Sequence record: MK327931.1
Direction: 5' to 3' (one strand)
DNA length: 64,000 nt
Part shown: one piece after another, positions 1 through 64,000 of the stretch
How positions within the stretch are numbered: position 1 is the stretch's first letter
Layout: every line of letters begins with the position of its first letter
Notes under the pieces: generated by a model
Database searches by the model: none
What the model was told of the DNA's origin: nothing
What the model saw: only the letters and a program-made list of their open reading frames with translations
Translations under genes and position numbers: made by a program

Positions 1-613
1 AATCAATGCACCGTACCATGTAACTCCTTTATCGTATGTTTCTAATGAAATAATATCTTTTTCACCAATTTCATAAGAAAGAACAACTGGTCTATTATAT
101 GACCATTTAACATTAGATCCCCAATTAACGAGGTTAGACCCTGTTTGCTGAGTTAATAGGATAGTAATTGAATAAACTTCAGTAGGAGCAGCACCAATAG
201 CAATAGTGGTATTTCTGTCAGATAAATTAATATTAAAAACTGTATTACCTGATAGGGGATTAATTAAAATATTATTAGAACTCAATACATTATATAATTT
301 GTTACTAGCACTATCATACAATGTTACCCATTCTGTTTCATGATTCTCATTAGTAGCTTTAGCTTTTATTTTTACATTATTTTCGGAAGAAGTCATTCCA
401 GTCCAGCCAGAAATAATAAAAGAACTGTTTTTATTTGTTCCAAATGATGCAATTACTGAATCACTAAGAGAACTATCTTCACCGTCAATAGATCCGAGTA
501 CTGACAATGTTAAAACCATCATTTTTAATGTCTACACCAGTTGCACCTGAAAAATTATTTTGAAATTTAATAACTCCGGTAGTGTGGATATCTGTGAAAA
601 TTTGTTGTGCCAT
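1..613 (-). CDS. Putative tail fibre/virion protein split by a +1 frameshift (43-aa ORF 613-485 plus ORF 522-<1 running off the window)
   Basis: RBS AAGGA before ATG at 613 (MAQQIFTDIH...). A second frame is open from 531 to base 1 and ends ...NWGSNVKWSYNRPVVLS...DIISLETYDKGVTWYG, a tail-fibre C-terminal-type module. Confidence 0.6.
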
Positions 614-641
614 ACTTAATCCTTGCGTTAATTTATATTGA

Positions 642-650
642 GTATTTATT
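642..650 (-). promoter_or_regulatory. Late-type promoter candidate (AATAAATA)
   Basis: One mismatch to T4 late TATAAATA, ~30 nt upstream of a structural gene start. Confidence 0.4.
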
Positions 651-690
651 GAGTATAATGGCATTTTTAGTACCATTATACTCATGTATG

Positions 691-1923
691 TTACTTATAC
701 CATTGCATTTCTCTGATATCAATGATAATTTTTGATGCTAATTTAATGTTTGGTTTTTTGGGAAGTACTGATTTCTTATATAGAACATCACGAATGTATT
801 GTACTTTATCATCGAAATATTCTAATACTTCTTCATACTTCCACTTACCATTACGAATATCCATCAACATTTGTGCATCAGGTCGTTTAACTTGAATAAT
901 TCCACTCTGTAAAGCTTCTTCTGCACTATTCAAAAGTCTAATTGTGTGCATAGCATGTTTACAATCGTATCCGTGTTGTGATTCTAAAACAGCACGTTTG
1001 GCATTACGATTTTCTTTCCATTTATGATAACTTTTCCTATTCTCACTATTCTCCTGATATTCTTTTTCGTTAAATTTTACAATTAGTTCTGGTTTGGTTT
1101 TCAACTCTTCAGTACTACGTTCTTTTGAAAAATAACGCAATGAACCATCATGGTTAATAGTGCTTTCATTAGGATTCTTAACAATCGCAAAAATGTTTTC
1201 TCCGTAATGAATTAGTTCATAACCATTATTAAAATTCAATAAATTGAAATCACGATCAAGAATTTTTTCAGTAGTGTAGTTATGCACTAATCTTACGAAA
1301 TGATATTGCTTTAATGGATTTTTCGAAACTAACTGCAATGATGTATCACGCATATATTTTTCAAAATCAATCTTTTTAGCATTAAATGGATGTAAGTTGG
1401 ATGTATCTAAACGTTCAACAAGATACTGTGGGAATGAATCATACATCCACGCAAGAACCTCATCGACAGGGTGTTCTTCTAAAATCTCATTTAATCGTTT
1501 TTCAGCAATACGCTCTTTATCCATCCAACCGTGATGATTTGTCATACGCTTAATCTGATTATATGCATATCCAGTGTATGAAAATGCAATCTTGGAACTA
1601 AGAAGTTTTTGGTTAAATGAACGAAGATAGTCATAAATTTCAGTACTTTCCACAATGTGTTCAGGTTCAACCCAAAGTGATTCAAGAATATTAGGGTTAG
1701 CTTCAGTGTATAATTTTAAATACTGATTCAACTCATAGAATTTAGTATCTTCTTCGCTTTTGTCAGCTACCTCTTTGACCTTATAGAAGGGTGTAAGAAT
1801 AAATTCTTTATTAGCAAGAAAAATACCACGATAATCAGTATCACTTTCCGGTGTACTGGTTCCGTAGGCTTGTGACCCAGCCAAGTGTTTCACTATTGTT
1901 TGTTCAATATATTGGTTATTCAT
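691..1923 (-). CDS. Pol-beta superfamily nucleotidyltransferase (RlaP/YcgL, T4 NrdC.11-like)
   Basis: GSQAYGTSTPESDTDYRGIF motif; NPNILESLW; C-terminal YDCKHAMHTIRLL. Confidence 0.85.
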   Translation of the reverse strand: MNNQYIEQTIVKHLAGSQAYGTSTPESDTDYRGIFLANKEFILTPFYKVKEVADKSEEDTKFYELNQYLKLYTEANPNILESLWVEPEHIVESTEIYDYLRSFNQKLLSSKIAFSYTGYAYNQIKRMTNHHGWMDKERIAEKRLNEILEEHPVDEVLAWMYDSFPQYLVERLDTSNLHPFNAKKIDFEKYMRDTSLQLVSKNPLKQYHFVRLVHNYTTEKILDRDFNLLNFNNGYELIHYGENIFAIVKNPNESTINHDGSLRYFSKERSTEELKTKPELIVKFNEKEYQENSENRKSYHKWKENRNAKRAVLESQHGYDCKHAMHTIRLLNSAEEALQSGIIQVKRPDAQMLMDIRNGKWKYEEVLEYFDDKVQYIRDVLYKKSVLPKKPNIKLASKIIIDIREMQWYK

Positions 1924-2321
1924 AGATAAATTGTTAACTCCTTTAAGAAACCATTATAATAACGATTAAAGTCATGTTCTAATGTTTTATAATCATCAAA
2001 ACTAAAACCTAAATTGATAATTGTATCTTCTTGAAAGAAAGTTTCTTCATTCATACATTCAATAGGTTCGTAATTAATTCCACCTTTGAAAACTTTTGTA
2101 AAAAACATTCCATCATTATTAATTTCAACATACATAAAATTATTTTCTGGGTCACGAGGACAGACGATATTCAGTGAACTATTTCCACTTGTATTGTACT
2201 CATAAGAAATTATATCAAAAGAATCAATACCATAACACTTAGATTTTTCTTTATCGCCAAATACTTTTCTATCTGTACTCATATTGCGTATAGTGCTATA
2301 GATATCATCAACTGTAGTCAT
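1920..2321 (-). CDS. Hypothetical protein, outlying member of the EExxFQxS/T family
   Basis: MNEETFFQEDTIINL. Confidence 0.6.
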   Translation of the reverse strand: MTTVDDIYSTIRNMSTDRKVFGDKEKSKCYGIDSFDIISYEYNTSGNSSLNIVCPRDPENNFMYVEINNDGMFFTKVFKGGINYEPIECMNEETFFQEDTIINLGFSFDDYKTLEHDFNRYYNGFLKELTIYL

Positions 2322-2323
2322 AG

Positions 2324-3991: not shown

Positions 3992-6721
3992 TTATTTCCA
4001 ACGTGTACCTGGACCTGATGGTACACCAGTACTGGCAGGTATCGCTGAACCACGTTTCGTTGTACTTGGACGATATGTCAAAAAACGAGTTACTTTTTCT
4101 GTATCAATTGAAGTTATTCCTGAAGTTCCAGTAACTATCTTACCAATGTAAGTGCTAGTTAAAGATTCATCAATTGTTTCAGTACTAATAACATATGACG
4201 CTTTCTTAGTATTCCTGTTCATTTGTATATACAAATAGAACGTAGTATTAGCTGGGTTACTTTTTACAGTACTTAAATCAACACTTTGTATAGGTAGTCT
4301 GTCGAAAATTCCACCTAAAAACACCGGAACTTCACGTGTAAAGTACACTGAGAATCCTTGTGCAACGTCTTGTGATACTACCACAATCTTTTCTTTAACG
4401 CTACCATTTCCACTAATTAAACCATCCATTTCAGCAGATGTTGTACCAAAAACGCTGAATACAGATTTGGTTTGATAGTCAGAATCTTGAAAATTGTAAT
4501 ATCCAAAACCAACACCAGGAATAACACCATGTTGATATGCTGCACCAAGTTGGATGTAACTAGATGATAAAAAACGATTTGATGTTATGACACCATCTAC
4601 TGTTTTAGCTATCATCATCTTAAATTGTGCATTACCTGGTTGTGAAAATTGATGAACAGCATCAACACCAATGTAACCAAATCCTGAATATTTTGCAACT
4701 GTTAGACCAGTACAACGTTTCATATATGCTTCAGTAATAATTCCTGTAACAGAACTAAGTGTCTCATATCTAGTACTTACCAATGTAGCTGAAGTTATGT
4801 TAGATCCAGATAATACAACATCAACTTCGGCATAGATTGCATAACCTTGGTTATTGTTAAGATTATATGCTGAAACTACTGCAATGGATTTAGAAAAAGT
4901 ATTATCAGGTACATAATATAATACAATTTGTCCAGATAGTGTACCAACAATGCCAGAGTTTCCTAGATTAGCAAAAATATCTTGTTTTAATGATTCTAAT
5001 ACCGTTGGTTCTATTGTATATGTTTCATCAAATTCTAAAGTATCTGGGTTTAATAATCCACCACTTGTTTTATATACACCTTCAATGAATGATGTTCCAT
5101 AACATCTAACACTACCATCGGTATCAACAAGAGAAATCATAGCAGTGTATGTAAAATCATCACCTATTTGTTTACGATTAGATTGTGGTGCAAAACCATT
5201 TAATGTAGTATTATTTTGAACTGAGTTATATTGATATGTTGGTTGTGAGCCTATTTCAGAAAAAACAGTATTATTATAATTATATGTTACATCATCATAC
5301 GTACCAGAACATGCTAATAATATTTTTCTATTATCGATGAAACGTACACCTAATAGGTTTGCACCAACAGCACTACCAAAAACTGGTAAAACGTTTGCAT
5401 TTATAACGTTACTTGCGGATCTAGTACTAGCAACCCATGAATCAAACGGTGTACCACTAACCTTATATCGTTGTAGACCATAAAATTCAGTTGAACTCCA
5501 TCTAAATTTAGATGCAAATACTAAACCATCTTTGGTTTGACATAAACCACCTGCGTTTCCTAATACACCAGCAGCAGTTGTCCCAGTAAAGTTGACCATA
5601 TTGATTTCAAATGGGTTAGAAACTTGAAATCCATTATCATATGAAACTGTAGCAGGAGCACGAGCAGAACCATCTAGTGACATAGATTTTGAGTTTATAT
5701 TATAAACAAAACTGATACCAGTACCATACACTGTTGAAATATATAAAGGTGTAACCATTCTATGGGTTGGGTATAAAGTTACACGTATTTTGGATAAATC
5801 AGTACTAACGTTTGCTTGTATATTAAAGTCTGTATAATCCGAAAATTCTACACGTGAGACTGGTGATGTAACTTCGAATAATGAATCCGAGCTAGTACCA
5901 ACACTATATAATCTATCAAACACTCTTATGTTATTAGATGCAGAATAACTTGTATTTCGAACAGTTTGCCCTGATAATCCAGTAACTTTTGTTAATGATG
6001 CCATTGAGCTTGCTTTCACATCACTTAGCTCTACTGTATAAATTGAAAGTGCTAATCCTAAATTAGAAACACTTTTATCTTTACACCAAATATATACTTT
6101 TGTTCCAACAATATGAGTATATATAGGCATATCATTACCAAAAGAAGTACTTGGTACTTTAGCATGAATATGTGATACTTCGTTGAATGTACCATTAGTT
6201 ATAGTAAAAATATAATTATCTTCTGTACTTAAACATCCAAGCATTTCATAACCATTAGAGCCAATAAAATACTTAATATTCTCTGTACTACTCATAATTG
6301 AAGGTTTATACATTGAATTGGTTGAAATAACACTTTCTTGTGAAATCATGGTTATATTTCTGATTTCTCGTATAAATGAATAATAAAAACCTTTAGTACT
6401 ACCATTGGTTCCGCTACGCAGAACAACGGCGGTTCCATCATCTTCAATAATTGTTGGCTGAACTACTTGGTCACTTGACATAGGTGTAGCACCTTCATAC
6501 GACCCACTTACGTTTAATGGCAAGTAATCCATTTCTCCTACACGTGATATAGGCAACATATCTAAAATACTTTGAACTTCTGAACGCTTATATATTGGAT
6601 ATTGAACAATTCCAGTATTGGCATTCGGTGAGGTTCCATTAAAAGTACGCATAGCGTACCTTTGTCCAATTGCCAAGTTCCCAAGGATCTCGGCACTTCC
6701 TATAATTCGTTTTGATGACAT
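3992..6721 (-). CDS. Large putative virion tail/baseplate-associated protein (~909 aa, true start MSSKRIIG)
   Basis: S/T/G/N-rich beta-type composition; paralog of 7337..10033; RBS AAGGA before 6721. Confidence 0.7.
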   Translation of the reverse strand: MSSKRIIGSAEILGNLAIGQRYAMRTFNGTSPNANTGIVQYPIYKRSEVQSILDMLPISRVGEMDYLPLNVSGSYEGATPMSSDQVVQPTIIEDDGTAVVLRSGTNGSTKGFYYSFIREIRNITMISQESVISTNSMYKPSIMSSTENIKYFIGSNGYEMLGCLSTEDNYIFTITNGTFNEVSHIHAKVPSTSFGNDMPIYTHIVGTKVYIWCKDKSVSNLGLALSIYTVELSDVKASSMASLTKVTGLSGQTVRNTSYSASNNIRVFDRLYSVGTSSDSLFEVTSPVSRVEFSDYTDFNIQANVSTDLSKIRVTLYPTHRMVTPLYISTVYGTGISFVYNINSKSMSLDGSARAPATVSYDNGFQVSNPFEINMVNFTGTTAAGVLGNAGGLCQTKDGLVFASKFRWSSTEFYGLQRYKVSGTPFDSWVASTRSASNVINANVLPVFGSAVGANLLGVRFIDNRKILLACSGTYDDVTYNYNNTVFSEIGSQPTYQYNSVQNNTTLNGFAPQSNRKQIGDDFTYTAMISLVDTDGSVRCYGTSFIEGVYKTSGGLLNPDTLEFDETYTIEPTVLESLKQDIFANLGNSGIVGTLSGQIVLYYVPDNTFSKSIAVVSAYNLNNNQGYAIYAEVDVVLSGSNITSATLVSTRYETLSSVTGIITEAYMKRCTGLTVAKYSGFGYIGVDAVHQFSQPGNAQFKMMIAKTVDGVITSNRFLSSSYIQLGAAYQHGVIPGVGFGYYNFQDSDYQTKSVFSVFGTTSAEMDGLISGNGSVKEKIVVVSQDVAQGFSVYFTREVPVFLGGIFDRLPIQSVDLSTVKSNPANTTFYLYIQMNRNTKKASYVISTETIDESLTSTYIGKIVTGTSGITSIDTEKVTRFLTYRPSTTKRGSAIPASTGVPSGPGTRWK

Positions 6722-6737
6722 CTTTCTTTTCCTTAAT

Positions 6738-7325
6738 TTACCAACCAATTGTACCAGTTTCTGATGGTTTTCCAGTACTGACTGGGAATGAAGAACCTTT
6801 TTGTGTAACACTAGGTCTATATGTACTAAATCTGGATACTTTATTAATGTTTATATTTGTAATACCACTTGTACCAACGGTCAGTGTTCCAATAAACATT
6901 ATAATTTCAGATTCTTGTATTTGTGTTGGTGATATTTTATAAATTGGTTCACCGAGAACTAACGTTGCATATACATATTGTGTTTGTGTTCCAGATGAAA
7001 CAGTTGAAGCAAAAATAGAAACTGCTGGAAATTTATAAAGATAACCACCAATAAATGATGGTATCTGTCTATTAAATGTAAGACTATAGCCTGATGAAGT
7101 AATATTTAGACTAGCGTCATCATACAATTCTCCGTATTGTGTAAGTGGTAATCCATTGACAATAAAGTTAACTTCATCTTTGGTAATAGAGGGGAATGTA
7201 CATTCCCCATTTGAATTTGTTGGGTAATAAGTCATATTATTACCTAATACACCAAGTCCAGTACTTTTACCCTGTACTGTAACTTGTTGCATTGCCTTAA
7301 GGTCTGCTCTTATTTTAAATGCCAT
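6738..7325 (-). CDS. Short paralog of the flanking tail proteins (shared C-terminal domain)
   Basis: C-terminus ...YRPSVTQKGSSFPVSTGKPSETGTIGW matches both neighbours. Confidence 0.7.
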   Translation of the reverse strand: MAFKIRADLKAMQQVTVQGKSTGLGVLGNNMTYYPTNSNGECTFPSITKDEVNFIVNGLPLTQYGELYDDASLNITSSGYSLTFNRQIPSFIGGYLYKFPAVSIFASTVSSGTQTQYVYATLVLGEPIYKISPTQIQESEIIMFIGTLTVGTSGITNININKVSRFSTYRPSVTQKGSSFPVSTGKPSETGTIGW

Positions 7326-7336
7326 TATGTAATCCT

Positions 7337-10033
7337 TTACCAGTTTATGGTTCCTGTTTGTGATGGTAGACCGTAGCTAACTGGGAACGATGAACCTGCT
7401 GATTCAAGTGAAGCACCAAATATATCTAAACGTGAACGTTTTTGTATATTAATAGTTTCGATTTGAATTGCGTTAGTTTGAATAGTACCTATCCAAAAAA
7501 TATTATATGCAGTTGTTCCTGTTTCGGAAATAACATCAGTAGTTATGTAGTAGTTTGCCAACCCTTGTTCTAATTTAACATATACATAAAATGTTGTATT
7601 TGCTGGATTAGATTTTATAGTTCTCAAATCAATATTTGAAACTGGTAGTGTAAAAGACTTACCTGATAGTATAACTGGTGTTTCCTCTGTAAAATAAACA
7701 ATAAACCCTTGAGCAACGTCTTGTGATACTACGTTAATTGGGCTACCTTGTGGAGTCCAGTTATTATAGTCGGCTATCGTTGTTCCATATTTTTGAAATG
7801 ACATTTTATTTGTATAATCCAGTGGATCAAAAATACCAAATCCAATACCAGGCAACGCAGTGGGTTGTCTTCCTTGTTCATAACTGGCATGAGAACCAGT
7901 AATAACAAAACTTGTAAATTGTGCAGTTGATTTAGTTACATATGCTCTAAATTGATGAGTTGCTGTATTTCCTATTGTTGGATGTGTTAATGGGTCAGAA
8001 CCACCAATGAAGTAGAATGAACCACCATCATAAATTGTTAACCCAACAGAAGAAGATGCAATCGAACCATTACCATTAGGTGTAAAGTTTTCACCATATG
8101 TATTTTCTAGTACTAAACGCTTAAAGGTAATAGATGTTATATTTCCAACTCTAGTATTAACGTTAACTTCAGCAATTCTAATATAGTTTTTATAGTCATT
8201 TGTTATAGTACTCAACATAACAAAAGCCGGAATGTCAGTTTGTTGTGGAACAAATAATGTCATATCACGATAAGCTTGTGAAGATAAGTTCCAGTCACTT
8301 AGAACTTTAGCATATTCTGTATTTCTAAAGTTATCTAGAACTGATTGTGTAACACTAATAACACCAGTACCATTTAAGTTTTTATCATATGAAAATGATT
8401 GTGAATAACGTTGACCAACCATAAAAATACCGCCATTAGTTGTTACAGTTGAACCTGAAATACTACTAATGAAAATTCTATTATTGGCATTATCATCTAC
8501 ATAACCACGTTCAGTTGTAGGTTCATAACCTTGTATGGTTCCTAAAGATAATGATTTAAATGTAAAATTAGGAGTACTTTTATGAACTGCATATGATGGT
8601 CTAAACCCACCACTACCAGACGCACGTGAATATTGTTTAGTACTATTATCTGGTAACAACTCCACACCATTAATAAATGAACCAACTGCTGAACCAAAGG
8701 ATGGTCTAACAACTCCACCTTTAAAATCAGTTGATTGTACTGCACGAACGTTAATCATACTATAAACAATTTGTATAGGAAACTTTGCTTTTTGCATAAG
8801 TAATGGTTCTGCTAAGTTTGGACACACAGTACAAAAAGCTTCACCTGAACTTAAGTAAAAATAAGAACTATAAATGTTTCTTGCATTAGCATGATTATAT
8901 AATGGATCATTATTTAAAACGTTACCTGTAGGCACTAATGCAGAACCAGTATTGGTTATAACCAATGGTGCTTGATATGAACCTATGTCATTCCCAGCGT
9001 CTAGGGTGCATTGTTTAGTACTCATATTAAATGCAAAGCTGTAGCTATGTTGTGGTCGGGCATTATATGTCGCCATTGTAAACCATGCATCACCATTCAT
9101 TCTAAAACGAAAGTTCTGTGTTCCTGGTTGCTGTGCAACATACAAATCAATGGATGTCATATAAATCCCAATACCACGTAGGTTTTGTGGTACATACACA
9201 TAAGGCTTATCTGCTATATTAGTTGAAGTTACTTGATTAGTAATAACCATGTTATTCTGTGCAGAATAAGTTGTATTATAGAATGTTTTTGTAGTCCATC
9301 CTGTAATACGAGTTGCCGTATATGTTCCATTGCTAATATTATATACAACTCGGACAACAACTAACTGTAGTTGGTTATTTTCATTAAGAACACTAAAGAC
9401 ATAGATTGAACCATCTTCAGCCATCATTGCAAATTCTATACCACCTTCAGGGCAAATATCTGCTTGATTTACAAAAAAACCAGTATGTAATTTATCATCT
9501 AATGTACCATTAGTAATAGAAATAAACAATCCATTAGTACTGTTAGAAGTGTCTACATATCTACCGAGTAAAATATTTGGATCAGTATTGTATAAGCCAA
9601 TTGCGACGCGATTTGAACCGAAAAAACCAGGCTTGTATTGACGACTGGTGTTAATTGTACGGCTCATGTCATCAACTGATAATGCGTTAGCCAAATATGA
9701 ATAATATAATCCCTCAACACTACCGTTTGTACCACTACGTAATAATACGAGTGTACCATCGTTTTCTAATAAAATTTTATTTCTACGTTGGGACTGGTTT
9801 TCAGATGCACCATTGAAATCACCAGATACACCAGCAGGAAGATAGTTTTGTGACCCATAATGGGAAATTGGCATCATACTGACGATATCTAGTACTTCAT
9901 CTCTTGAATAAGTATCTAGCTCCATATTGCCATTAGCATCAAATACTTGATCATTGATACCTTGTATTGTTCTTTTACCATTAACTGTCACATTATGTGT
10001 GACATCCAAGCCACCATATATTTTCTTTGACAT
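7337..10033 (-). CDS. Large putative virion tail/baseplate-associated protein (898 aa)
   Basis: Shares ENDGTLVLLRSGTNGS and VVSQDVAQGF.VYFT motifs and the C-terminal domain with 3992..6721. Confidence 0.7.
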   Translation of the reverse strand: MSKKIYGGLDVTHNVTVNGKRTIQGINDQVFDANGNMELDTYSRDEVLDIVSMMPISHYGSQNYLPAGVSGDFNGASENQSQRRNKILLENDGTLVLLRSGTNGSVEGLYYSYLANALSVDDMSRTINTSRQYKPGFFGSNRVAIGLYNTDPNILLGRYVDTSNSTNGLFISITNGTLDDKLHTGFFVNQADICPEGGIEFAMMAEDGSIYVFSVLNENNQLQLVVVRVVYNISNGTYTATRITGWTTKTFYNTTYSAQNNMVITNQVTSTNIADKPYVYVPQNLRGIGIYMTSIDLYVAQQPGTQNFRFRMNGDAWFTMATYNARPQHSYSFAFNMSTKQCTLDAGNDIGSYQAPLVITNTGSALVPTGNVLNNDPLYNHANARNIYSSYFYLSSGEAFCTVCPNLAEPLLMQKAKFPIQIVYSMINVRAVQSTDFKGGVVRPSFGSAVGSFINGVELLPDNSTKQYSRASGSGGFRPSYAVHKSTPNFTFKSLSLGTIQGYEPTTERGYVDDNANNRIFISSISGSTVTTNGGIFMVGQRYSQSFSYDKNLNGTGVISVTQSVLDNFRNTEYAKVLSDWNLSSQAYRDMTLFVPQQTDIPAFVMLSTITNDYKNYIRIAEVNVNTRVGNITSITFKRLVLENTYGENFTPNGNGSIASSSVGLTIYDGGSFYFIGGSDPLTHPTIGNTATHQFRAYVTKSTAQFTSFVITGSHASYEQGRQPTALPGIGFGIFDPLDYTNKMSFQKYGTTIADYNNWTPQGSPINVVSQDVAQGFIVYFTEETPVILSGKSFTLPVSNIDLRTIKSNPANTTFYVYVKLEQGLANYYITTDVISETGTTAYNIFWIGTIQTNAIQIETINIQKRSRLDIFGASLESAGSSFPVSYGLPSQTGTINW

Positions 10034-14735: not shown

Positions 14736-16541
14736 AAGTCTAAGTCTATACCCTTTTCAAGTGATTTTTCTAGAACCCAAAGTTTACATTCTTCACTCTC
14801 CAAATGTATCTTTGCCTCTTGCTGTTCTCCTATTGTACAAGACTTTATGAATGCACGCAAGGCTTGGATTGTATTTTTTAAATTTTTTATGTCATCGATG
14901 ATTTTTTCTTTGGTTTCTTCATCGATTACACATGAACTCCAACTGTGTCGTTCCTCCCAAACTGTTTTAGCGGGATTATATATTGATTGTGATGCATTGA
15001 ATGAATGTATTTTATGAAATTTATCATCTGCTTCCTGTTGGGTATAATCCCCATATGTGTTCAGAACATTTTTGTATAATTCATCAATGGCCTCTTCATA
15101 CGTATCACCACCACAATCCAATTGATAATCATGTGCTTGTACCCATTCGTCGTCTTGCTCAATATACATTGGTGAAAGAAATTCTACCCAAAATTGAGTC
15201 TTTGTATTCAATGCTTTGAAATCTTCAATTCGATTTGTCATTGGACACACATCATGAGGTTCAATATCAATCCTAGCTGGAACCATATCTTTGTTTATGA
15301 ATTTAGGATGACCCAAAATCCACCAGTACTTTTCCGATGTAGTCATAGTAATCTCCAATTAAAAAGTACTGCACACGATGGCAGTACTGATGTTAAACGT
15401 AACGTTTCTTTTTATAATCATACCCTACTGCTTTGTAAAAGTCAAACAAAGAAGCATGTTCAAATGTAGGTAATAGATCATATGGGTGCTGATAGTTCGC
15501 AATACCAACAATAGCCATCATTGATTCAGCAGTTCTTACGTTATCACTATCCCATTCATCTAAACGCCAAAGTGAGCAAAGTACCTCTCGTTCATGTTGC
15601 TTACCCAGAAAGAATCCAGCTTCACGGTCACGAAATGCACCTACACTGACAGTACTTTTGTACCAGTCTTTTTCACCATATAATGGCATACGGATAATAT
15701 GTTTTTCTTTAGCTTCTCCAAAGCGATGAAGAAATGCTACATAATCACTCATAATTTATAACCCATTACAGGTTTGGTATGATCCGGTTCGTAAGACTTT
15801 TCAGTACTGAACCCTCTGAAATTTCCACGTCCTGGATTTGGACAAGCCATCCCTTGTATTGAATGCTTACCCTTATCTTTGCCACAATTTTTACATTTGT
15901 AGCCAATTACTTCTTTCATTGTGCATCCTTCGGAACAGTATTAAGACGTTTGCGATTCACAATCTTCCTGCACATGAGGTTAAGATCTTGCCCATGACGC
16001 ATAGTATGACATGCGTATAGTGTTCCTTGATGATTTAGTTTTGTTAAACCTTGACGGATGATTTCAGCATCCATCTCATCAACTTTAGGAGCACAACCAC
16101 AGAGAATAATGGATACAAATATTGTTAATGTAATGAATATATTTTTCATGATATTTTTTCTCATTTAGTAAAACACGAATTATTACTGATAAGTTCATCA
16201 AGTACTTTTTGTACTTCGATAGAATTAATATCAACTTTGTAATAATTATAGTTTTTAACTCTAAAATGTTCTTTTGATATATCAACTTTAAATTCAATAA
16301 TATCAAGATTACCAATAAAATCAGACTTATCAGTTCTTAAATCCAAAATACCTAATTCCGGTTTTTGTGGTTTACATAAAATCAAACCAAATTTATTTTC
16401 TTCAAATGCCTGATTAAACATATCATAATAATCACTAATAACAAATCTAATATTATCAGTGCTTAACTTTCCTGATTTTCCTTTTTTATAAACAGAAACA
16501 ATGTTTAGTTCAAAGGTTTTACCAAAGCGTGTGATTTTCAT
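14732..16541 (-). other. Hypothetical CDS run (14732..15358, 15393..15752, 15749..15919 CxxC 56 aa, 15916..16164 lipoprotein-like LCGC, 16161..16541)
   Basis: Tiled ORFs; LCGC lipobox after a hydrophobic N-terminus in 15916..16164. Confidence 0.55.
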
Positions 16542-24990: not shown

Positions 24991-24998
24991 TATAAATA
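24991..24998 (+). promoter_or_regulatory. T4-type late promoter TATAAATA candidate for the plus-strand gene
   Basis: Exact consensus ~190 nt upstream of 25186; an AT-rich chance match is possible. Confidence 0.4.
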
Positions 24999-25024
24999 AT
25001 ATAGTACTTAAACACTTAAGTCAA
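24996..25024 (-). promoter_or_regulatory. Sigma70-type promoter TTGACT-17-TATTAT
   Basis: Exact spacing, upstream of 24975. Confidence 0.6.
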
Positions 25025-48274: not shown

Positions 48275-48808
48275 TTATTTCCTCATGTATTTTATAACGT
48301 CTTCAAATAATTGTATTTTTAAGTCCTCGTCATTTCCAGGTAAAAACTCACGAAAACTATCAAAATCTTCATTTTTTGCGAAGTTACGCATTTGTGTTGA
48401 GCTATATTGACTTACATTACGGTCAATACCTGCCTGAATTGCTTTTATACTACAAAAATTATACAACTTACCATTGTACATGTCAAGAGTTTTTTGAAAA
48501 GAATCAATACGGTCAGAACCACAAATGAAAAGAACATCTAAGTACTTTCCATCCAGTTCTCTCATTATATCAAATAGATTGTCTTCTGTGTAGATGTTCT
48601 CTTGCACTGAAGGATAGAATCCCTCTGTATAATACATTTTTAGTTCAGGTGGGAGTGGGTTTTTTATATTGTCAGTACTGGTGCTTAGATATATTTTTAA
48701 ATCAGCATTGTACTGTTCTTGTAATGTTTTGGCCTTTTCAAAAACTAAACCATGTCCACGATGTACAGGATTAATACGACCAAACGTTAATACACATGTT
48801 TCTTTCAT
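48275..48808 (-). CDS. HxGH cytidylyltransferase/NMNAT-like nucleotidyltransferase
   Basis: LTFGRINPVHRGH, NPL, ICGSDR, SSTQMR. Confidence 0.85.
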   Translation of the reverse strand: MKETCVLTFGRINPVHRGHGLVFEKAKTLQEQYNADLKIYLSTSTDNIKNPLPPELKMYYTEGFYPSVQENIYTEDNLFDIMRELDGKYLDVLFICGSDRIDSFQKTLDMYNGKLYNFCSIKAIQAGIDRNVSQYSSTQMRNFAKNEDFDSFREFLPGNDEDLKIQLFEDVIKYMRK

Positions 48809-49326
48809 AAATTCTTCATCACCAATCCGAGAGATTTAAGATAATTAATTTTAGCAGTGGTTAAGTACTTATCCAGTACTATCAGACACGAAGGAAATGG
48901 TGCTGAATCTGTTTTCTTATCGGGTTCTTCTGGTATACCAAATCGTAATCTTCCCTTAATAAAACAAATACAATCACATATTTTAGCAGCATAATCCTGA
49001 AAAGCAATTGTGTCGGTTCTTGAGGGTACAAGAATAACTACAGTTGCCCCGTTATTATATGCATCTACTGCTTTAGATAACCAAGTTTTCAAATCACTGT
49101 ATGGTGGATTCAACCAAACTATATTATTTCCCCAATCCTGTGATAGTGAATCATCTTCTGGAGTGAAAAAATTATCACACAATGCAGTCTCATCAACACA
49201 AGCAGCATCAAGTGTAAATCCCCATAACTCATCCAAATCTTCAAAGAAATCTTTGGGAGTTGTCCAGTTATCTTTTCCAGTACTGAAATGTACTGAATGT
49301 TTTTTCGAAGCATCCTTCTTCGACAT
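48805..49326 (-). CDS. dam: Phage DNA N6-adenine methyltransferase (phage Dam family)
   Basis: DNWTTP..FF, FTLDAA, VWLNPPYS, VILVPSRTDT, KGRLRF, SAPFPS. Confidence 0.92.
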   Translation of the reverse strand: MSKKDASKKHSVHFSTGKDNWTTPKDFFEDLDELWGFTLDAACVDETALCDNFFTPEDDSLSQDWGNNIVWLNPPYSDLKTWLSKAVDAYNNGATVVILVPSRTDTIAFQDYAAKICDCICFIKGRLRFGIPEEPDKKTDSAPFPSCLIVLDKYLTTAKINYLKSLGLVMKNL

Positions 49327-49342
49327 TATATAATTCCTTTTG

Positions 49343-49888
49343 TTAGAGACAGTTGTGTACTATCTTATCAAAAGTACTACTGTCAATGTTATATTCATAT
49401 AAAAATTTAAAATGTGAACCGTAACGCATCATCAGATTAAACTCTTCTTCAGTATTGAACTTGTAATCATGAATAGTCTCAGGGGTACATTTTAAACCCA
49501 AGAACTCTATAATTTCAGATGTTACATCATATCCTGAATTGAAGTATTTAACCCAAACACATTTTCCTTGTGGGTTGTATTTTCTATATTCTCCTTCTAG
49601 TTCTCCTTTAATAATATGAGCCTTAACACTTATTGAATTATTACTATATCTTTCTTCAAAATAATTACCATACTGGGCTTTTGATATTGTTGGTTTTTGA
49701 GTAGGAAGTAATTTAACTGAAGTTACTTCAATTCCATTTTGTAATTCCTTTATATAAGAAATGCATCCTTTTTCTTTAATAACCACATATCCAGTAAAGA
49801 TATCTTCGTCTTGTGATTGATTAATGCAATCATCAAAATTCAAAGTTTTATAAGTAACAGTTTTTTCTTTTCTAATAAATGCCATCAT
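49343..49888 (-). CDS. Hypothetical protein (true start MMAFIRK; MORN-like GEYRKYNPQGK)
   Basis: RBS AGGA before 49888. Confidence 0.6.
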   Translation of the reverse strand: MMAFIRKEKTVTYKTLNFDDCINQSQDEDIFTGYVVIKEKGCISYIKELQNGIEVTSVKLLPTQKPTISKAQYGNYFEERYSNNSISVKAHIIKGELEGEYRKYNPQGKCVWVKYFNSGYDVTSEIIEFLGLKCTPETIHDYKFNTEEEFNLMMRYGSHFKFLYEYNIDSSTFDKIVHNCL

Positions 49889-49894
49889 TATTCC

Positions 49895-50536
49895 TATGGA
49901 AACATCAATGAATATACGTGACGTTGATTGCATCAACATCAGTAGAATTATCATGCTACGCATGTCTAATTCTACACAAGTACTATTTTCTTTTAATTAA
50001 TATTGACGGGGTTTGCTTGAGCATATTTCATCCCCCCGCAGGGGAAAGAACAAAAAAATTTGACGCTGGTGGCCTTCACATAGTTCATATCACGAATTCT
50101 CTTACGAGACGAAAGCGGGTTGCTCTGTTTCTCTCTATCGCGGTTCTTGTAGCAACGGTCGTCGGTCTTAAACATCCCGACACATAATACAAATACCATA
50201 TGACCAGTACTTGTATTTGATTTCACAAAATTTGGACGCAACTATATTGTATAATTCCGACCGCATATTTCTTATGAAATCTCCCTTAGATAATTGGTAA
50301 GGTGCGATCCTTATATGTCTATCGAGGAACTCTCTTTATCCTATTGGAGTTCTTTATACAGCCGCATTGCCGTGAGTGGTTCAAACTATGCCATCATCTA
50401 ACGGGTTTCATCTGCTGTTCGTACTGAAAGGACTACTCATCTACCCTCTACATTTTCGAGTGGATTAGGCTTTTAATCATTTCCTTATGGGAACCTTTCA
50501 GGATTAAAAAAAGGTGACTAACATATTATGTTGTCA
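49895..50536 (-). ncRNA. Candidate large structured non-coding RNA (~640 nt)
   Basis: Only large gap in gene tiling; visibly higher GC; at least ten consecutive hairpins; promoter immediately upstream. Confidence 0.5.
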
Positions 50537-58183: not shown

Positions 58184-61100
58184 CGAATTTAATCCATCAT
58201 AAGTGGGATAATTGCCCATATCTTTTTCATAATCATATCTTCAGTAAAAACAAATGTTTTAGGAGCAGTATATGATATTGACACACCAAATGGAAGTTTG
58301 ATTGCATCATCAATTATATTATGAATATCAAACCATGTTTTAACATAATCATACGGTGGAAGTTCATGAATTGTACTTAACTGAAAGTAATTCTCTTCAC
58401 CAAAATCACTATATTCAATTTCACAAATTTTAGTGAATTGATGATTCCATTTAGATATAATACTATTTTTATTATTGTACATAGTAGTTCTATGCATAAA
58501 ACCATTTTTGCTAGTATGATTTGATATTACGTTTTCTTCAATGTCAGTATCTATTTTAAAATTCATATCAAAGTTGTAGTACGGACTTGACGATTCTTTG
58601 AATTTTAAATGTAAATTGCGATTGTTATTAATTTCAATTTCAATACAAAACACATCTGAATCAAAACGATTAAACTTGTAATCGTTATCTTCCGGTAGAT
58701 TCTGTATTTTTTTCATAATACTAAGCATAGGGTGTACTACACTTTTAATAAAATCATTTGTTATTTTCATAGTATTCCTTTAGAACTTTATATGATTCAA
58801 CAATACTATCTTGTGTATAATTTGAACTATATACAACAGCACTTGTTTTAGTTGACCATAGATATGACATAAAGGTTATAACACTACTACATGGACTTAA
58901 TGTATTGTTTTGAAATTCAATTTCTTCAATGTTATCAGTACTGGTATAGATGAATTGGAAAGTACCCATTGATTTATTGGACAGCGATACTATAGTAGAA
59001 TCCGTACCAGGACTATACATGAATGTCTCATTACTAATTGAACTATCATTAGTATATGATGGTTTGGGAATATAAATCAAACGCATGATATCGCGTTCAA
59101 GACCTGACTTATTACTTTCCACCAAAGAAATCATATCTATATTTGATATATGTTCAACACTGACATGGAACTTTTTGTCGAGAATCACATCTCCATGAGA
59201 ATTTTTATATGAAGACAAAATCTCATACATCTCAACTAATTCGCGTGCATTTAATAAACTCATGTTTTGTCTCTTAATGAAAGAATATCCTTAGTATAAA
59301 CTGAAACAGAAATATGATTATATTTCATCATTAATTTATACACATAAGAAGCTAGTACTAAATCGTAAATTAATTTAGTATTATACAGTACTTGGTATTG
59401 TAACGCAAGTGAATCAATATCATCTTTACTTTCAATATCCAGAAATGTACCGAAAAATGTAGTACCGTAGAGATGAAAAGTGGAATTAATGCAATCAATG
59501 CATTCATTGTCCAATAGAGTAGATGCTGATGCCCTCGGTGAATCCCAAATAGTCACTGCGTGTATGCCCTCAACGAACAAATCTATCCATATTTTGTGTC
59601 GTTGTCTTTTTTTTGTTTTATAATTTTCTGGATTTGAAAGTGTAGTTTCAATTATATCCCATATGTACAAACAATCATCTCTTGTCATTATATAACCTTA
59701 TCCATTGCTGCATTTAATGCTTTTAAACGATCTACATTCAAATTATTGAAGATGTACGTTCCTAACATGTGGAAATCGAACTGGTTCTTTTTGTATTCAT
59801 GATAAATTAAACTACAAAAAATAATAGTACTAAGAACCTCTTCAGGTATAACAGTGCTCATCTGGAACAGTTCTTCTTCAACTGTACTTGAATCTGGATT
59901 GATAGATTTTAACACATACTCTTCATCACCGAATAGTACTTTAATATTATATAAAACACCAACAGTACTAATATGGAATGGGTGGTGTGAAAAACTTCCA
60001 TCATCCTTAATTTGTATATCGGTTCTAATCTCACACTCTTCATTACTTTTACTTTTATTTTTTACAATACAAATATTTCTGGCCCCAGAAATAGTAAGAA
60101 TACCGTGGTCGTAATATTCATTTGACCAACATTTGGATGAAATTGATACATCACGGATGAGATATTGTTTTTCAATTTCTTTCGCACTACCAACAATTGA
60201 TAGCATTTTTTTACTGATATCATATAATAACTGATGGCGTTCTGTCATATAACTATAAGCGTTCATATTTTTCCTTAACAGATTCTATATTTTGAAGTAG
60301 TGTATTCAGAACATCAGTCTTGCAATTGATAAAATCATTGTACATAACTAGTTCACCACAATCAAGAATTTTTGCAGTATCGTAACAAAGCATTAAGTAC
60401 TCGAATTCTTTGTAATTGTCCAACAAGGATTTCTGGAAAATGAATGCATCTCGAATATCTTCACTTTGGTCTAATTCTGGTGGAACATCCAACCCAATAA
60501 ATCCATCATCTTCACTGAAATTAGATTCTACAATTTTATTCATTTTTTCATGTAATGCATTCGCAAATACCATATTAGAAGAAATAGAACCAATACGTTC
60601 ACGATTTCTGGATGTGCGAATGTACATAGTAATCGTATCCCATGAACTTTTAATTTTTTTAGAAAATTCATAAGTTTTATATACATCCAACTGAACTGAT
60701 CCAAAACGATGTTTGGATTTGTTTTCAATTTTCAGTCGATAATCATCAAATTCAACAATTTCTGTAATGTCATGAATCTCTGAAAGTTCTGCAATGTCAT
60801 GCATGAGTCTCAAAATTTTAGTTCTGATATGGTTCATTGTGCATCCTCGAATTTAACAGGTACATGTTCATTAATGAAATTCTTAAGAGCCTGTACTAAA
60901 TCCTCTAATTCTTTTGTACTGTATTTTAAAATAGTTTTAAAGTGAATCAAATCTTTTCTTTCCATGATCTTTGGAATTTTATATGCTAACTCTAAACAGC
61001 GTACAGTACTGGCATCATACAAAAGGTTTGCGTTGAACATTAGAACATTGTATTCATCAGATGAAATTTTATAATTATATGTATCAATCACTTCATGTGT

Positions 61101-61427
61101 GTATAAATTCTTATACACAATTTTATTCTCACTGAAGTTTGAGCAAACACACAGATGATCGTTGTAAAATGAAGAACGATAATCTTGTTTACGTTGTACA
61201 TCTGCTATGATTTGTAATACTGTATATTTTTCTTCAGAATCCAACTCAATGTTTGCATAACTGCTCGCAGTTTCAGATACAAGGATATTGATGTTATATT
61301 TCTCATTAACTTTAATGTACTGGCGTGAGCCAGTATCAGGAATGAACTTAAAACAATGCTTCAGAAGTAATGTGACTTCTTTAATTAATTCAGTACTCAT
61401 AGATTCCTCCAACTCTAGTTAAAATCA

Positions 61428-61456
61428 AGTATAACACACCTGAATGCTCTTGTAAA
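61428..61456 (-). promoter_or_regulatory. T4-early-like promoter TTTACA-17-TATACT
   Basis: Exact spacing with TGTG extension. Confidence 0.7.
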
Positions 61457-61467
61457 GCCATAAACAC

Positions 61468-61489
61468 AAAAAGACCCATACGGGTCTTT
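61468..61489 (-). terminator. Intrinsic terminator
   Basis: AAAGACCC/GGGTCTTT plus U tract. Confidence 0.8.
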
Positions 61490-63989
61490 ATTTTGGTAAA
61501 ACACTGTCGATGTACGCTAGAACCTCATCTCGAAGGTACGTTCCATCTATAGTTAGGTAATAGTTCATGGGAATATCACTCCCAACCTTCTCATAAATTT
61601 TCATACATGATATCACATCTTCATCACAAATGGTACTCAATTGAAAAATAACTTCATCGGTTAACGGTACGATATCATGTTTAGATAGGGGATTTGTATT
61701 TTCATTCAACACAATATTAATCAAGTTAGGAGTATTCTTTGACGAAATATAACGATGCTTACTACGAATTACCATTCTCGATAGTGAAATACTGGAACTC
61801 CATCTTGGATCAACATCTTCATATGATAACGATATTAACATCTCGTGAAAATCTTGAAATTTCATTGACGCATAATATGTTTTATCCTCACCGTACATAC
61901 CAAATGATTTAAATTCAATATCCCCCACTTTGTATGTATCGACATCATTATTTGAGAACTTTATTAAACTATTAATTAGTCTAATTAGAATATCATCTTT
62001 ATCCATTCTTAAATAACTCCAAGTGCATGTCGTATAAATCTCTGAAGTCTTCATAGAAATCTTTTTCTTCGAGAATATTCTTTAAACTGGGAATCTCTTC
62101 CATAATTTCATCTATATCTGATTCTATGAAAAATCCTGATGGATTATCGTAGTTTTGTAACAGATAACTGAAAGTAATAATGTAAAGAAGTTCATTAGGA
62201 TTGTGAATTAAACTTAGCTGGAACATAGCTGATTCTAAATCTGATTCAGTACTAAGATCAACCCAACGTGAATTTCTATAATCAATTCGTACTTGACTTG
62301 TATTTGGATTCCATGTGAAGCAATGTGTACCAATATGACCTATACAACCAACCCTTGTACTGTCTCCGGTATCAACACTGATATCAACAAATAGTTCAAT
62401 ACCGATATCGGTTGATGTTACACGACCTTTTTTCAGAAATAAATCATTATCCTTACGAAATTGTTTGGATGAAAGAGTGTCAATGATGCACATCAATGTT
62501 TTTGCAAATGCAACACAATGACGAAATTCAAGCCTATGAAATTGGTAATCATTGATATTCATAATTCAACCCTCAATATTTTATCAGCAATAGATATAAC
62601 CTTATCATTGAATACATTACCAATCTCAATCCTTATATACATAGCAGGTGGAATCTTTCCTTGTAGTGAATAATATGTTTGTATACCTAAGTACTCATTA
62701 TCTGATAATGAAAATTTGATTCTCTCCATATCAATGTCTGTTACTGGTAAATCTATCATTTCATAATGGTAGTCAACGTTTTCATTGTATATTTTATCGA
62801 AGTAATTTGAATAATCACTACTAATGTAGATGCTATCATCACGAATAATTACTTTATAATCAGAAGGTTCAAATTTATCTTTACAGGAAAAGAATGCATC
62901 ATCTATTTTCTCTTCTCTTATGCCAAATAACATTCTACCATCATATTTTACATCAAGAATACTACCTAGTATATTAATGGTACAATGCTCATCAATATTA
63001 TGATGTAATGAACGTTTTTTGTATTTTGGGTTAATGAAAATTTTCATTAATTTTATACAAATTTCAGTAATGCATTTTACATTCTCATTTTCTATGTACA
63101 TTAAAAGCCCTCTTTAATTCTTTTACATTTTTAATGAATACTTTCATTGCAGAAATCTCAAAAGATAATGTATTAAATTTGCAGTACTTTTTAAAGTACG
63201 ACATAATATATAACATTTTGAGTTCTTTTTCTGTATAAATTAAACTGTTTTGAAAGTAACTTTCTTCGGAAATGTCCGTAAGAAAAGAATAAAATGTATT
63301 TTGCTTGTGCACAATTTTAATACTATCAGACCAAGATTTGTATGAAACGTAATCAGTACGTGCAAAATCATATAGTGAATTAGATGTATCTGTGTATGTT
63401 TCCGAGAACACAATCTTATATATCTTATCTTGAATTCGAGAACATATGTACCTATGGTCATCTGTCTCACTGATTGCAATGTATCTATGGAGTAAATCTT
63501 TATGAGCATTGATGAACTCAAACACTTCTAAACACTCCCTAGCGAACTTCATAGTTTCTCTGTACTTTCGGTTCATTAGTCTCTCCAAACTTTACCAGGG
63601 AAGTGTTTCTCGTAGTACTCATCATCACTTAACATATAATCAGGAGTTTCTACTTCTATGGTTTTGAAGATTGTTTCTGGAATGTGTGTGACTTTATTGG
63701 GTTGTACTTTATGTTCGCGTAAAACCTTCTGTATCGCTCCTAGACGTTGTAAATCGATACATGTAGGAAAGACTAAGCTGTACTGAAATAACTCATCAGG
63801 GGTCATTATAGACACATCTTTAGCTTGTTTGATTTGATAATTAGTACTAATGAATATATCAAATCCTTGTACAGCATTATAGCTTACATAGGTTGTTTTA
63901 TTTTTGTCAATAGGAGCACTTAAACGATATCCATATATCCCGTGTTGGTCAACAACACAACGTTGCATAATTTTAATCATTTCTAACAT
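61488..63989 (-). other. EExxFQ family CDS (61488..62054, 61999..62562, 63085..63588, 63576..63989) and similar-sized 62559..63101
   Basis: DEVIFQLSTI / ESAMFQLSLI / EESYFQNSLI / PDELFQYSLV. Confidence 0.7.
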
Positions 63990-64000
63990 AATTTACCTCA

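Follow-up and report, generated by a model that had tools for sequence, protein, structure and literature searches.

The analysed stretch (hereafter the window) comprises 64,000 nucleotides of record MK327931.1, the genome of Escherichia phage vB_EcoM_G17/121Q (hereafter G17), an Rak2-like jumbo phage of the genus Asteriusvirus. The window contains 7 N runs, including one at 27994-28014 that was missing from the initial list. It is letter-identical to MK327931.1 on both sides of the masked zone with a single offset of 260,880, so the flanks are continuous and the N runs keep their true length. All counts were split at N, and ORFs were reset at N. The features discussed below are as follows.

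1-64000, no strand: an array of 181 independent AGTACT sites, 42 of which are CAGTACTG; 167 lie inside minus-strand ORFs and 14 are non-coding.
15365-15388, minus strand: an intrinsic-terminator hairpin whose two arms each carry an AGTACT copy (15365-15370 and 15383-15388), followed by a T run.
24996-25024, minus strand: a promoter-like site inferred from consensus only, with TTGACT (25024-25019), a spacer containing AGTACT (25008-25003) and TATTAT (25001-24996), 33 nt upstream of the ORF at 24352-24975, in readable sequence between two N runs.
48805-49326, minus strand: an orphan DNA N6-adenine methyltransferase of the phage Dam family (173 aa), assigned by profile search.
59380-59408, minus strand: an early-type sigma70-like promoter with a -35-like TTGCGT (59408-59403), a 17-nt spacer ending in AGTACT (59392-59387) plus G, and a -10 TATAAT (59385-59380), about 120 nt upstream of the gene at 58754-59263.

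The G17 record annotates a terminator at window positions 15366-15387, and this hairpin is the only one of the 11 annotated terminators in the window that is built from two AGTACT copies.

An earlier note made from the sequence alone had reported about 174 AGTACT and about 42 CAGTACTG at about 31% GC. Exact counting confirmed this observation and showed it to be stronger than reported, with 181 AGTACT (one per 352 bp, largest gap 1274 bp), 42 CAGTACTG and a GC content of 33.0%. The expected numbers of AGTACT are 21.3, 32 and 61 under order-0, order-2 and order-3 Markov models, respectively, and those of CAGTACTG are 0.57, 1.7 and 4.3. AGTACT has the highest z of all 4096 hexamers, followed by its overlapping words GTACTG and CAGTAC. 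The order-4 model, which had been proposed as a refutation test, gives 149, but it conditions on AGTAC and GTACT, which are themselves the signal, and is uninformative. In the whole G17 record there are 1034 copies compared with 154 of the reversed word, and every 5-kb bin of 214 kb examined is above expectation. The copies are independent of each other, because no two sites in the window share more than 24 of 40 flanking bases (mean 13) and BLASTP shows no large paralogue family. A dispersed repeat or mobile element is excluded by this result.

To examine whether codon or peptide usage accounts for the enrichment, we applied gene-aware nulls to 110 minus-strand ORFs containing 167 sites. A synonymous-codon shuffle gave 41.3 ± 5.6 (z 22), a codon shuffle gave 22.8 ± 4.8 (z 30), and a shuffle that keeps the protein, per-gene codon usage and exact dinucleotide counts gave 69.6 ± 5.0 (z 19.5). 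In the last shuffle each frame is enriched (85 vs 38.5, 33 vs 14.6, and 49 vs 16.5). By the first ORF assignment, the sites fall into S-T (84), x-V-L (49) and [KEQ]-Y-x (34) contexts and non-coding DNA (14), the last at similar density. AGT, ACT, GTA and TAC are common codons here. However, 85 of 147 S-T dipeptides are spelled AGT-ACT (21 expected), and S-T and V-L dipeptides are over-used 1.69- and 1.43-fold while T-S and L-V are not, indicating that amino-acid sequences are bent to make the word.

The flanks of the sites are symmetric. C at -1 and G at +1 each occur in 84 sites, both are present in 42 of 181 (23%, against about 2.7% by composition), and G is the rarest base at -1. T at -3 and A at +3 are also preferred, and these preferences hold in every frame. 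The preferred extended form in Asteriusvirus is the symmetric 12-mer T-n-C-AGTACT-G-n-A, which suits a dimer with a footprint of about 12 bp. The flank preference drifts between lineages, with CAGTACTG making up 2–42% of sites, and differs between phages of the same host.

The enrichment is a clade trait. Ten Rak2-like genomes (Asteriusvirus, Alcyoneusvirus, Mimasvirus, Eneladusvirus and the unplaced Salmonella phage 7t3) carry 853–1312 sites each. In contrast, the relatives PA5oct, Atu_ph07 and XacN1 carry 15, 25 and 0, respectively, although their GC content is the same, T4 carries 28, Deimos-Minion carries 54, and the whole E. coli K-12 chromosome (4.6 Mb) carries 400. Density is highest (6–7 per kb) in the terminal repeat/early region and lowest in constrained core genes.

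Comparison between genomes indicated that individual sites are under purifying selection. G17 sites are kept in A4 at 44% vs 19% for frame-matched control hexamers, in EJP2 at 44% vs 11%, in 7t3 at 27% vs 11%, and in other genera at 10–20% vs 7–10%. The sites are thus conserved 2–4 times better than the controls at 60–70% nucleotide identity, and they turn over at long range. They are also spaced more evenly than chance. The CV of gaps is 0.73 in the window (0.99 for random placement) and below the random mean in 12 of 12 other loci, while control hexamers give 1.03. Fewer genes lack a site than Poisson predicts (61 vs 82). Intragenic sites show no helical phasing or pairing, so cooperative binding there is not indicated.

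The earlier note had suggested that a factor might create the sites through methyl-directed repair. This idea is not supported for repair of the methyl-directed or very-short-patch type. None of the 9 single-substitution neighbour pairs is depleted (observed/expected 0.7–2.5 by order 2 in six genome sets; 0.87–1.25 for AGTATT/AATACT), and the conservation of individual sites points to selection rather than replenishment. An RNA-level motif is contradicted by the boxes upstream of -35, which lie in untranscribed DNA. Together with the shuffles, the enrichment of all frames and non-coding DNA, and the low counts in sister phages, these tests refute an explanation without function, although an order-4 model nearly absorbs the count.

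A part of the sites occupies fixed positions in sigma70-type early promoters. In the G17 terminal repeat, 19 of 33 TTG-N16-18-TATAAT promoters carry AGTACT at -35 and 13 carry it at -10, and in GAP32 the figures are 12 and 9 of 19. The AGTACT-N-TATAAT architecture seen at 59380-59408 occurs 10–37 times per genome in five genera, with 0 in the reversed-pattern control. AGTACTNTATAAT and AGTACTTGCA occur 10–37 and 8–44 times per genome, respectively, with 0–2 in controls. Distances between paired sites peak at 20–24 bp only in early regions. The promoter position holds for under 10% of sites (roughly 80 of 1034 in G17), and the great majority are intragenic without promoter context. The promoter boxes could also be inherited from duplicated promoter cassettes rather than each being functional.

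We next searched for a protein that might read the motif. Pfam, NCBIfam and PHROG scans of 40 window ORFs gave no DNA-binding family, and the HTH_3 and AbrB/MazE families are not shared across the clade. The only enzyme candidate is the putative methyltransferase at 48805-49326, which matches PF05869 (E 7e-32) and scores 91.5 bits against TIGR01712, below the cut-off of 97. PF05869 is present in 9 of 9 AGTACT-rich genomes searched and absent from PA5oct, whereas other methyltransferase families are patchy: PF01555 is found only in GAP32 and Yen9-03 (Mimasvirus and Eneladusvirus), not in G17 or RaK2, and PF00145 is missing from Yen9-03. In one alternative reading, this enzyme methylates AGTACT or its GTAC core, and the methyl mark, not a bound protein, would protect about 1,000 ScaI/RsaI-type sites from restriction and/or switch early promoters between injected (methylated) and newly replicated (unmethylated) DNA. 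A phage with 1,000 copies of a known type II target would presumably be very exposed unless the sites were modified, RaK2 DNA was reported as heavily methylated with data not shown (PMC3622015), and HIP1 is likewise tied to orphan methyltransferases (PMC4390886). On the other hand, the co-occurrence is confounded by common descent, with only one lineage lacking the gene, and the nearest homologue outside the clade (about 40% identical) is too distant to indicate specificity. Characterised members of this family are GATC-specific or non-specific, M.ScaI is an N4-cytosine enzyme, and GTAC outside AGTACT is barely enriched. Methylation alone also does not explain why sites should be multiplied, evenly spaced and given a 12-bp symmetric context. 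We regard methylation as the sole signal as possible but doubtful. It is not exclusive with the reading below, and a methyl mark instead of, or in addition to, a binding protein fits most of the data equally well.

A host reader, which the phage would recruit or titrate, was also considered. All enriched phages infect Enterobacterales, while PA5oct (a Pseudomonas phage), Atu_ph07 and XacN1 lack the enrichment, and early promoters must work before any phage protein is made. The obvious candidate is the nucleoid-occlusion factor SlmA, whose 12-bp consensus GTGAGTACTCAC has AGTACT at its centre (PMC3020112), and its titration could cause the cell filamentation reported for phage Sharanji (PMC13282480). 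SlmA requires G1, T2, a purine at 3, A4, G5, a pyrimidine at 6 and the mirror half (PMC3020112). However, no match to GTRAGYRCTYAC was found in about 320 kb of sampled phage DNA (the window and five other phage stretches). Only about 1–4% of sites have even one extended half-site (1 of 181 on each side in the window). T4, which has the same host, is depleted for the motif, and the flank preference differs between phages of one host. Its drift between lineages is predicted by a co-evolving phage reader but not by a conserved host protein. A host reader is therefore very unlikely, and SlmA in particular is largely refuted.

A Chi-like role, in which AGTACT would attenuate a phage helicase-nuclease so that phage DNA is spared and channelled into recombination-dependent replication while host DNA is degraded, was judged similarly improbable. 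A RecD-like helicase, a Cas4-like nuclease and SbcCD-like proteins are annotated in G17, and the motif is over-represented, evenly spread and rare in the host. In addition, GCGC, which is abundant in the host (6.8 per kb in E. coli), is totally absent from the clade, which points to sequence-based self/non-self discrimination. Nevertheless, known Chi sites are asymmetric, strand-oriented and read as single strands, whereas the word and its flank preferences here are symmetric, and nothing in that mechanism asks for a palindrome or explains fixed positions in promoters.

The interpretation that we favour, with a probability of roughly 0.45, is that AGTACT is a selected, DNA-level signature of the Rak2-like jumbo phages of Enterobacterales and the recognition site of a dimeric, sequence-specific, phage-encoded reader with two uses. 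Such a reader would bind a TYCAGTACTGRA duplex in preference to a scrambled one. First, the site would act as an operator-like box at two places in early promoters, abutting or overlapping the -35 element and immediately upstream of the -10 element, 20–21 bp apart on one face of the helix, where a bound reader would control early transcription, most simply by shutting it off. Second, it would act as a dense, fairly even, genome-wide mark of about one site per 350 bp and about 1,000 per genome. Because the host chromosome holds only 400 sites, the reader would go almost only to phage DNA, for coating, organisation or protection. The enrichment, DNA-level selection, symmetry, clade distribution, site conservation, spacing, promoter placement and host rarity were demonstrated by the present analysis. 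In contrast, that a protein binds the site, that this protein is phage-encoded, what binding does, and any methylation of the site are inferences from sequence, and no reader was identified in the scans described above.

The interpretation in the earlier note was thus supported only in part. Its view that the signal acts on the DNA, is not one peptide motif, is palindromic in a way that fits a dimeric reader, and resembles cyanobacterial HIP1 held, the traits shared with HIP1 being over-representation, above-chance site conservation, non-random spacing and a co-occurring orphan methyltransferase. No prior description was found in the literature searched. Of its three candidate reader classes (methyltransferase, nucleoid/packaging protein, nuclease), all still hypothetical, only the methyltransferase has a gene candidate. 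It had missed the placement in early promoters of five genera, the restriction of the roughly 1,000-copy trait to one clade, and the bending of amino-acid sequences.

A more speculative and rather unlikely extension is also compatible with the evidence. Rak2-like jumbo phages do not make a phage nucleus, and their published genome descriptions report no T4-type base hypermodification genes. They may instead tell their own DNA from that of the host by sequence alone, with the host-poor AGTACT multiplied about 1,000-fold as a positive self tag for a dedicated reader that also gates early promoters, and the host-rich GCGC erased completely so that a phage-borne GCGC-directed nuclease could destroy host DNA safely. 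This would be a two-word, sequence-encoded self/non-self system in a virus.

Phage proteins such as SPO1 TF1 and phi29 p6 bind all along the phage genome, prefer phage over host DNA and turn down early promoters, as in the working model proposed here, but they discriminate by base modification (hmU) or DNA bendability and not by an iterated exact palindrome, and no such protein has been identified in Rak2-like phages. Chi, KOPS and DNA uptake sequences are likewise short words multiplied by selection across coding DNA at the expense of codon and amino-acid choice, and mark own DNA for a protein machine. They are asymmetric, strand-biased and far less dense, and none is known to be part of a promoter. 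The SlmA-binding sequence is also palindromic, shares the AGTACT centre and is read by a dimeric helix-turn-helix protein in the same host group, but the outer positions that SlmA requires are absent, and if anything disfavoured, at the phage sites. Restriction-site avoidance in phages concerns the same class of words, and PA5oct, Atu_ph07, XacN1 and T4 behave classically in this respect, as does the clade itself for GCGC. For AGTACT the sign is opposite, with a 7–13-fold multiplication. The closest system is HIP1 (GCGATCGC) of cyanobacteria, a short palindrome that is many-fold over-represented at roughly one per gene in coding and non-coding DNA and in all frames, is conserved above expectation and hence kept by selection rather than repair bias, is distributed non-randomly, co-occurs with orphan methyltransferases, and has an unresolved function (PMC5861425, PMC4390886). 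The present motif differs in belonging to a virus rather than a cell, in having a 6-mer core, in being the phage's own signature in a host depleted for the word, in showing short-range evenness rather than 10–90 kb periodicity, and in being built into early promoters, whereas the HIP1 study found no role in gene expression.

Megablast places the window in Escherichia phage vB_EcoM_G17 / Sharanji / 121Q (100-99.8% identity), which belong to the genus Asteriusvirus, the Rak2-like jumbo myoviruses of 350-370 kb. Window base 1 corresponds to base 260,881 of MK327931.1, and both flanks of the masked zone are letter-identical to that record with the same offset, so that the sequence is continuous and the N runs keep their true length. 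The window contains seven N runs, one of which was missing from the supplied list. All counts were made on N-free segments, and ORFs were reset at N. The identical public record G17 was analyzed in pieces that leave out the counterpart of the masked zone, and whole-record searches contributed only counts, the first 100 positions per record, and family or pattern hits outside that zone. All genes in the window lie on the minus strand. Features of the window are as follows.
3992-10033 (minus strand): three adjacent ORFs (939, 195 and 898 aa) that are paralogues at 27-43% identity, with homologues annotated as structural or minor tail proteins in relatives and in phiKZ/EL-like phages.
16538-17509 (minus strand): an ORF with a C-terminal WGR domain (Pfam E 1e-10), a domain predicted to bind nucleic acid.
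24996-25024: a probable promoter-type context of AGTACT.
27994-28014: the seventh, unlisted N run of 21 bases; an AGTACT at 28016-28021 lies one base beyond it.
48275-49963 (minus strand): the Dam-family methyltransferase gene (48805-49326), flanked by a cytidylyltransferase-like ORF that overlaps it by 4 bp and by a 206-aa ORF with no assigned function.
59380-59408: a promoter-type context of AGTACT.

The observation of the earlier note, that AGTACT is highly iterated in this DNA, was confirmed. The window has 181 AGTACT and 42 CAGTACTG at 33.0% GC. The expected numbers of AGTACT are 21, 32 and 61 under order-0, -2 and -3 models, respectively, and those of CAGTACTG are 0.6, 1.7 and 4.3. AGTACT is the most deviant of all 4096 hexamers and is 8.5 times over expectation, while the next-ranked palindrome is only 2-fold over. 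The earlier note had proposed that an order-4 Markov model might erase the signal. It nearly does (149), but only because it takes the counts of AGTAC and GTACT as given, and Markov nulls of order 4 or higher were therefore rejected as circular. Gene-aware nulls were applied to 110 ORFs holding 167 sites. Shuffling of synonymous codons within each gene gave 41±6 (z 22), shuffling of whole codons gave 23±5 (z 30), and a shuffle that keeps protein, per-gene codon usage and exact dinucleotide counts gave 70±5 (z 19.5). In this strictest shuffle, each of the three frames is separately enriched about 2-3 fold. The sites fall in the S-T frame (84), the x-V-L frame (49), the [KEQ]-Y-x frame (34) and non-coding DNA (14). 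No two sites share flanks, the best match being 24 of 40 bases, and only three small paralogue groups exist with no large paralogue family. The copies are therefore independent, and inflation by a repeat family or by paralogy was rejected.

The pressure acts on DNA and is strong enough to bend proteins. Specifically, 85 of 147 Ser-Thr dipeptides are written AGT-ACT, against 21 expected from codon usage, and GTA-CTN is used for 61 of 140 Val-Leu (24 expected), of which 49 follow a codon ending in A. The dipeptides S-T and V-L are themselves 1.69 and 1.43 times over-used, while the reverse orders T-S and L-V are not. In contrast, Thr-Ser is never written ACT-AGT in the window ORFs (0 of 85, 12 expected), ACTAGT occurs 7 times against 21 expected, and many GC-rich 6-bp palindromes are at zero, which is classical restriction/CTAG avoidance alongside the AGTACT excess. 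The preference for C before and G after the hexamer, and for T at -3 and A at +3, is mirror-symmetric and is seen in every reading frame against frame-specific backgrounds. In this genus the preferred site is therefore a symmetric 12-mer, T-n-C-AGTACT-G-n-A. None of the nine one-substitution neighbour pairs is depleted in six genome sets, which argues against a directed repair process (such as very-short-patch-like conversion) converting one precursor word.

Whole-record counts indicated that the enrichment is a clade trait, not a host or GC effect. In the ten enriched genomes, the reversed-word control gives 136-187. One phage genome thus carries 2.6 times more sites than the whole host chromosome, a 32-fold difference in density. 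The absence of the word from XacN1 and its low count in Atu_ph07 are extreme avoidance of the same word in distant relatives. In PA5oct (the stretch at 100-150 kb), the most over-represented palindrome is CTGCAG (15 vs 3.9), along with TGCAGA-type words, which may reflect a codon effect or a weaker iterated palindrome of its own. The C..G flank preference varies from 2% to 42% of sites between lineages.

Table. AGTACT counts in whole records.
G17: 1034
CRJP21: 1022
A4: 922
EJP2: 1312
Salmonella 7t3: 853
Klebsiella RaK2: 937
Cronobacter GAP32: 1011
Pectobacterium CBB: 1235
Erwinia pEa_SNUABM_12: 1078
Yersinia fHe-Yen9-03: 1012
Pseudomonas PA5oct: 15 (same GC; reversed-word control 40)
Agrobacterium Atu_ph07: 25 (490 kb)
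Xanthomonas XacN1: 0 (385 kb; reversed-word control 127)
T4: 28 (166 kb)
Erwinia Deimos-Minion: 54
E. coli K-12 chromosome: 400 (4.64 Mb; reversed-word control 1147)

Individual sites are under selection but turn over. In codon alignments of orthologues, G17 sites are intact in phage A4 at 44%, against 19% for frame-matched control hexamers. The corresponding figures are 44% vs 11% in EJP2, 27% vs 11% in 7t3, and 10-20% vs 7-10% in the other genera. Some sites are shared by 7-8 of 9 genomes. The density stays near 2.4-3.8 per kb genome-wide while most positions change. The spacing is more even than random: the CV of gaps is 0.73 in the window, against 0.99 for random placement, with none of 2000 simulations as low, and the largest gap is 1274 bp, against about 2000 expected. 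The CV is below the random mean in 12 of 12 further loci, and control hexamers give 1.03. Sites are uniform along ORFs with no start or stop bias, and intragenic sites show no helical phasing. The density is not uniform along the genome. It is 6-7 per kb in the roughly 20-kb terminal repeat/early region, 2-4.6 per kb in the window, and 0.8-2.8 per kb in replication and structural modules, and is lowest in the most constrained genes (terminase, 0.6 per kb; major capsid protein, 0.85 per kb). Every 5-kb bin of 214 kb still exceeds expectation.

The motif was also found to be part of the early promoters, which the earlier note had not recognized. The early region, examined in the G17 terminal repeat (locus L015, 1-20500) and in GAP32 (locus L018, 3000-26000), consists of dozens of very small genes, each with its own strong sigma70-like promoter, a conserved G-rich 5'-UTR hairpin and a terminator, and it carries the highest AGTACT density. 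The G17 repeat recurs at an offset of 350,149. In the G17 terminal repeat, AGTACT sits at fixed places in these promoters. One position is fused to the -35 element (AAAA-AGTACT-TGCA, or TTGAC-AGTACT), the other is directly upstream of the -10 element (AGTACT-N-TATAAT), and often both are present, 20-21 bp apart. Of 33 TTG-N16-18-TATAAT promoters in G17 1-20 kb, 19 have the -35 box, 13 have the -10 box, and 5 have both. In GAP32, a different genus, the figures are 12, 9 and 8 of 19, respectively. AGTACTNTATAAT occurs 37, 17, 10, 13 and 15 times in G17, RaK2, GAP32, Yen9-03 and 7t3, with 0 in the controls, and AGTACTTGCA occurs 44, 8, 36, 28 and 25 times, with 0-3 in the controls. Pair distances peak at 20-24 bp only in early regions. 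The -35 box lies upstream of the transcript, so at least these sites cannot act as RNA. In the window itself promoter-type contexts are few (59380-59408 and probably 24996-25024), and more than 90% of all sites are plain intragenic sites. A role in termination was rejected, since only 1 of 11 annotated terminators in the window uses the motif. Among public reads, this DNA was found only in assembled contigs and low-share metatranscriptomes, which gave no transcript ends or modification data.

To identify a candidate reader, we scanned 40 window ORFs against Pfam, NCBIfam and PHROG. Apart from the Dam-family methyltransferase, the WGR domain and weak nucleotidyltransferase-like hits, only families of unknown function were returned, and no DNA-binding family was found in these ORFs or shared across the clade; in particular, HTH_3 and AbrB/MazE families are not shared by the clade. 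An ESM Atlas look-up of the ORF upstream of the methyltransferase (49343-49963) gave no usable result. Of four DNA methyltransferase families searched, only the phage Dam family (PF05869) is present in all nine enriched genomes tested and absent from PA5oct, although this correlation is confounded by descent and does not establish the specificity of the enzyme. We attempted to examine the link in an unrelated phage, but the only close homologue outside named Rak2-like records (phiKp_21, 66%) proved to be a fragment of a RaK2-like genome, in which the same three-gene order is kept (locus L019, 123-1850), and the next homologues are about 40% identical. The host protein SlmA binds GTGAGTACTCAC, but it requires G1, T2 and a purine at position 3 (PMC3020112). 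The phage DNA has no such site in about 320 kb, and it disfavours G at -1.

Symmetry over about 12 bp, selection on single sites, even coverage, rarity in the host, and two phased boxes over the -35 and -10 elements of early promoters together point to a dimeric, sequence-specific reader acting on double-stranded phage DNA. We think that the reader is phage-encoded, because flank preference drifts between phages of the same host and T4 lacks the motif (28 copies in 166 kb). The tentative working model is a protein that gates early promoters and marks or coats the whole phage genome; in this view, the reader would bind a duplex carrying TYCAGTACTGRA. While the five features listed here were observed in the sequences, the binding, the identity of the reader and the consequence of binding are inferences. 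The interpretation in the earlier note, that a dimeric phage factor reads or creates the sites, was thus supported in part, since the data point to a dimeric reader but argue against creation of the sites by directed repair. The main rival, which is less favoured but possible, is that the Dam-family enzyme methylates the site and the methyl group is the signal. This fits much of the data and may be true alongside the main model. Host-factor and Chi-like models are less likely, and neutral models and RNA-motif or peptide-motif models are excluded by the tests described here.

The tetranucleotide GCGC showed the opposite behaviour. It is totally absent from the window (45 expected) and from all of the roughly 590 kb sampled from five genera of Rak2-like phages (about 470 expected; counted in the window and in the sampled loci L003-L010, L012, L014, L015 and L018-L020, not in whole genomes), whereas E. 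coli K-12 has 342 per 50 kb and PA5oct has 47 per 50 kb. Absolute avoidance across phages of seven host genera suggests a clade-borne GCGC-directed nuclease, or a very widespread host one. Together with AGTACT, this suggests that these phages separate self from host DNA by sequence words, an idea that we regard as speculative and do not present as a finding. In practice, AGTACT density together with zero GCGC is a two-number diagnostic for this clade in metagenomes.

Phages are textbook avoiders of short palindromes, yet a whole clade of 350-kb phages multiplies one about tenfold, at a cost in codon choice and even in amino-acid sequence, and the same word is wired into the early promoters of the clade. 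This gives a sharply defined and cheap-to-test handle on three open questions: how nucleus-less jumbo phages mark, organise or protect their DNA, what controls their early transcription, and what highly iterated palindromes such as HIP1 are for, after 30 years without an answer. A 350-kb phage in E. coli K-12 is a far easier system than cyanobacteria for finding the reader. We found no mention of the motif in papers on RaK2, CBB, phAPEC6, G17, Sharanji or MIJ3, in a 2026 jumbo-phage review, in the literature on jumbo-phage palindromes and HIP1, or in full-text searches for AGTACT with phage, although the coverage of the literature was incomplete and the absence of a prior description is not proven.

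The proposed model is comparable in logic to SPO1 TF1 or phi29 p6. The nearest described phenomenon is HIP1 of cyanobacteria, which shares the over-representation, conservation above expectation, non-random spacing, orphan methyltransferases and unresolved function (PMC5861425, PMC4390886). The AGTACT case differs from HIP1 in that it is viral, is opposite in sign to the host's own usage, has a 6-mer core, and is built into promoters.
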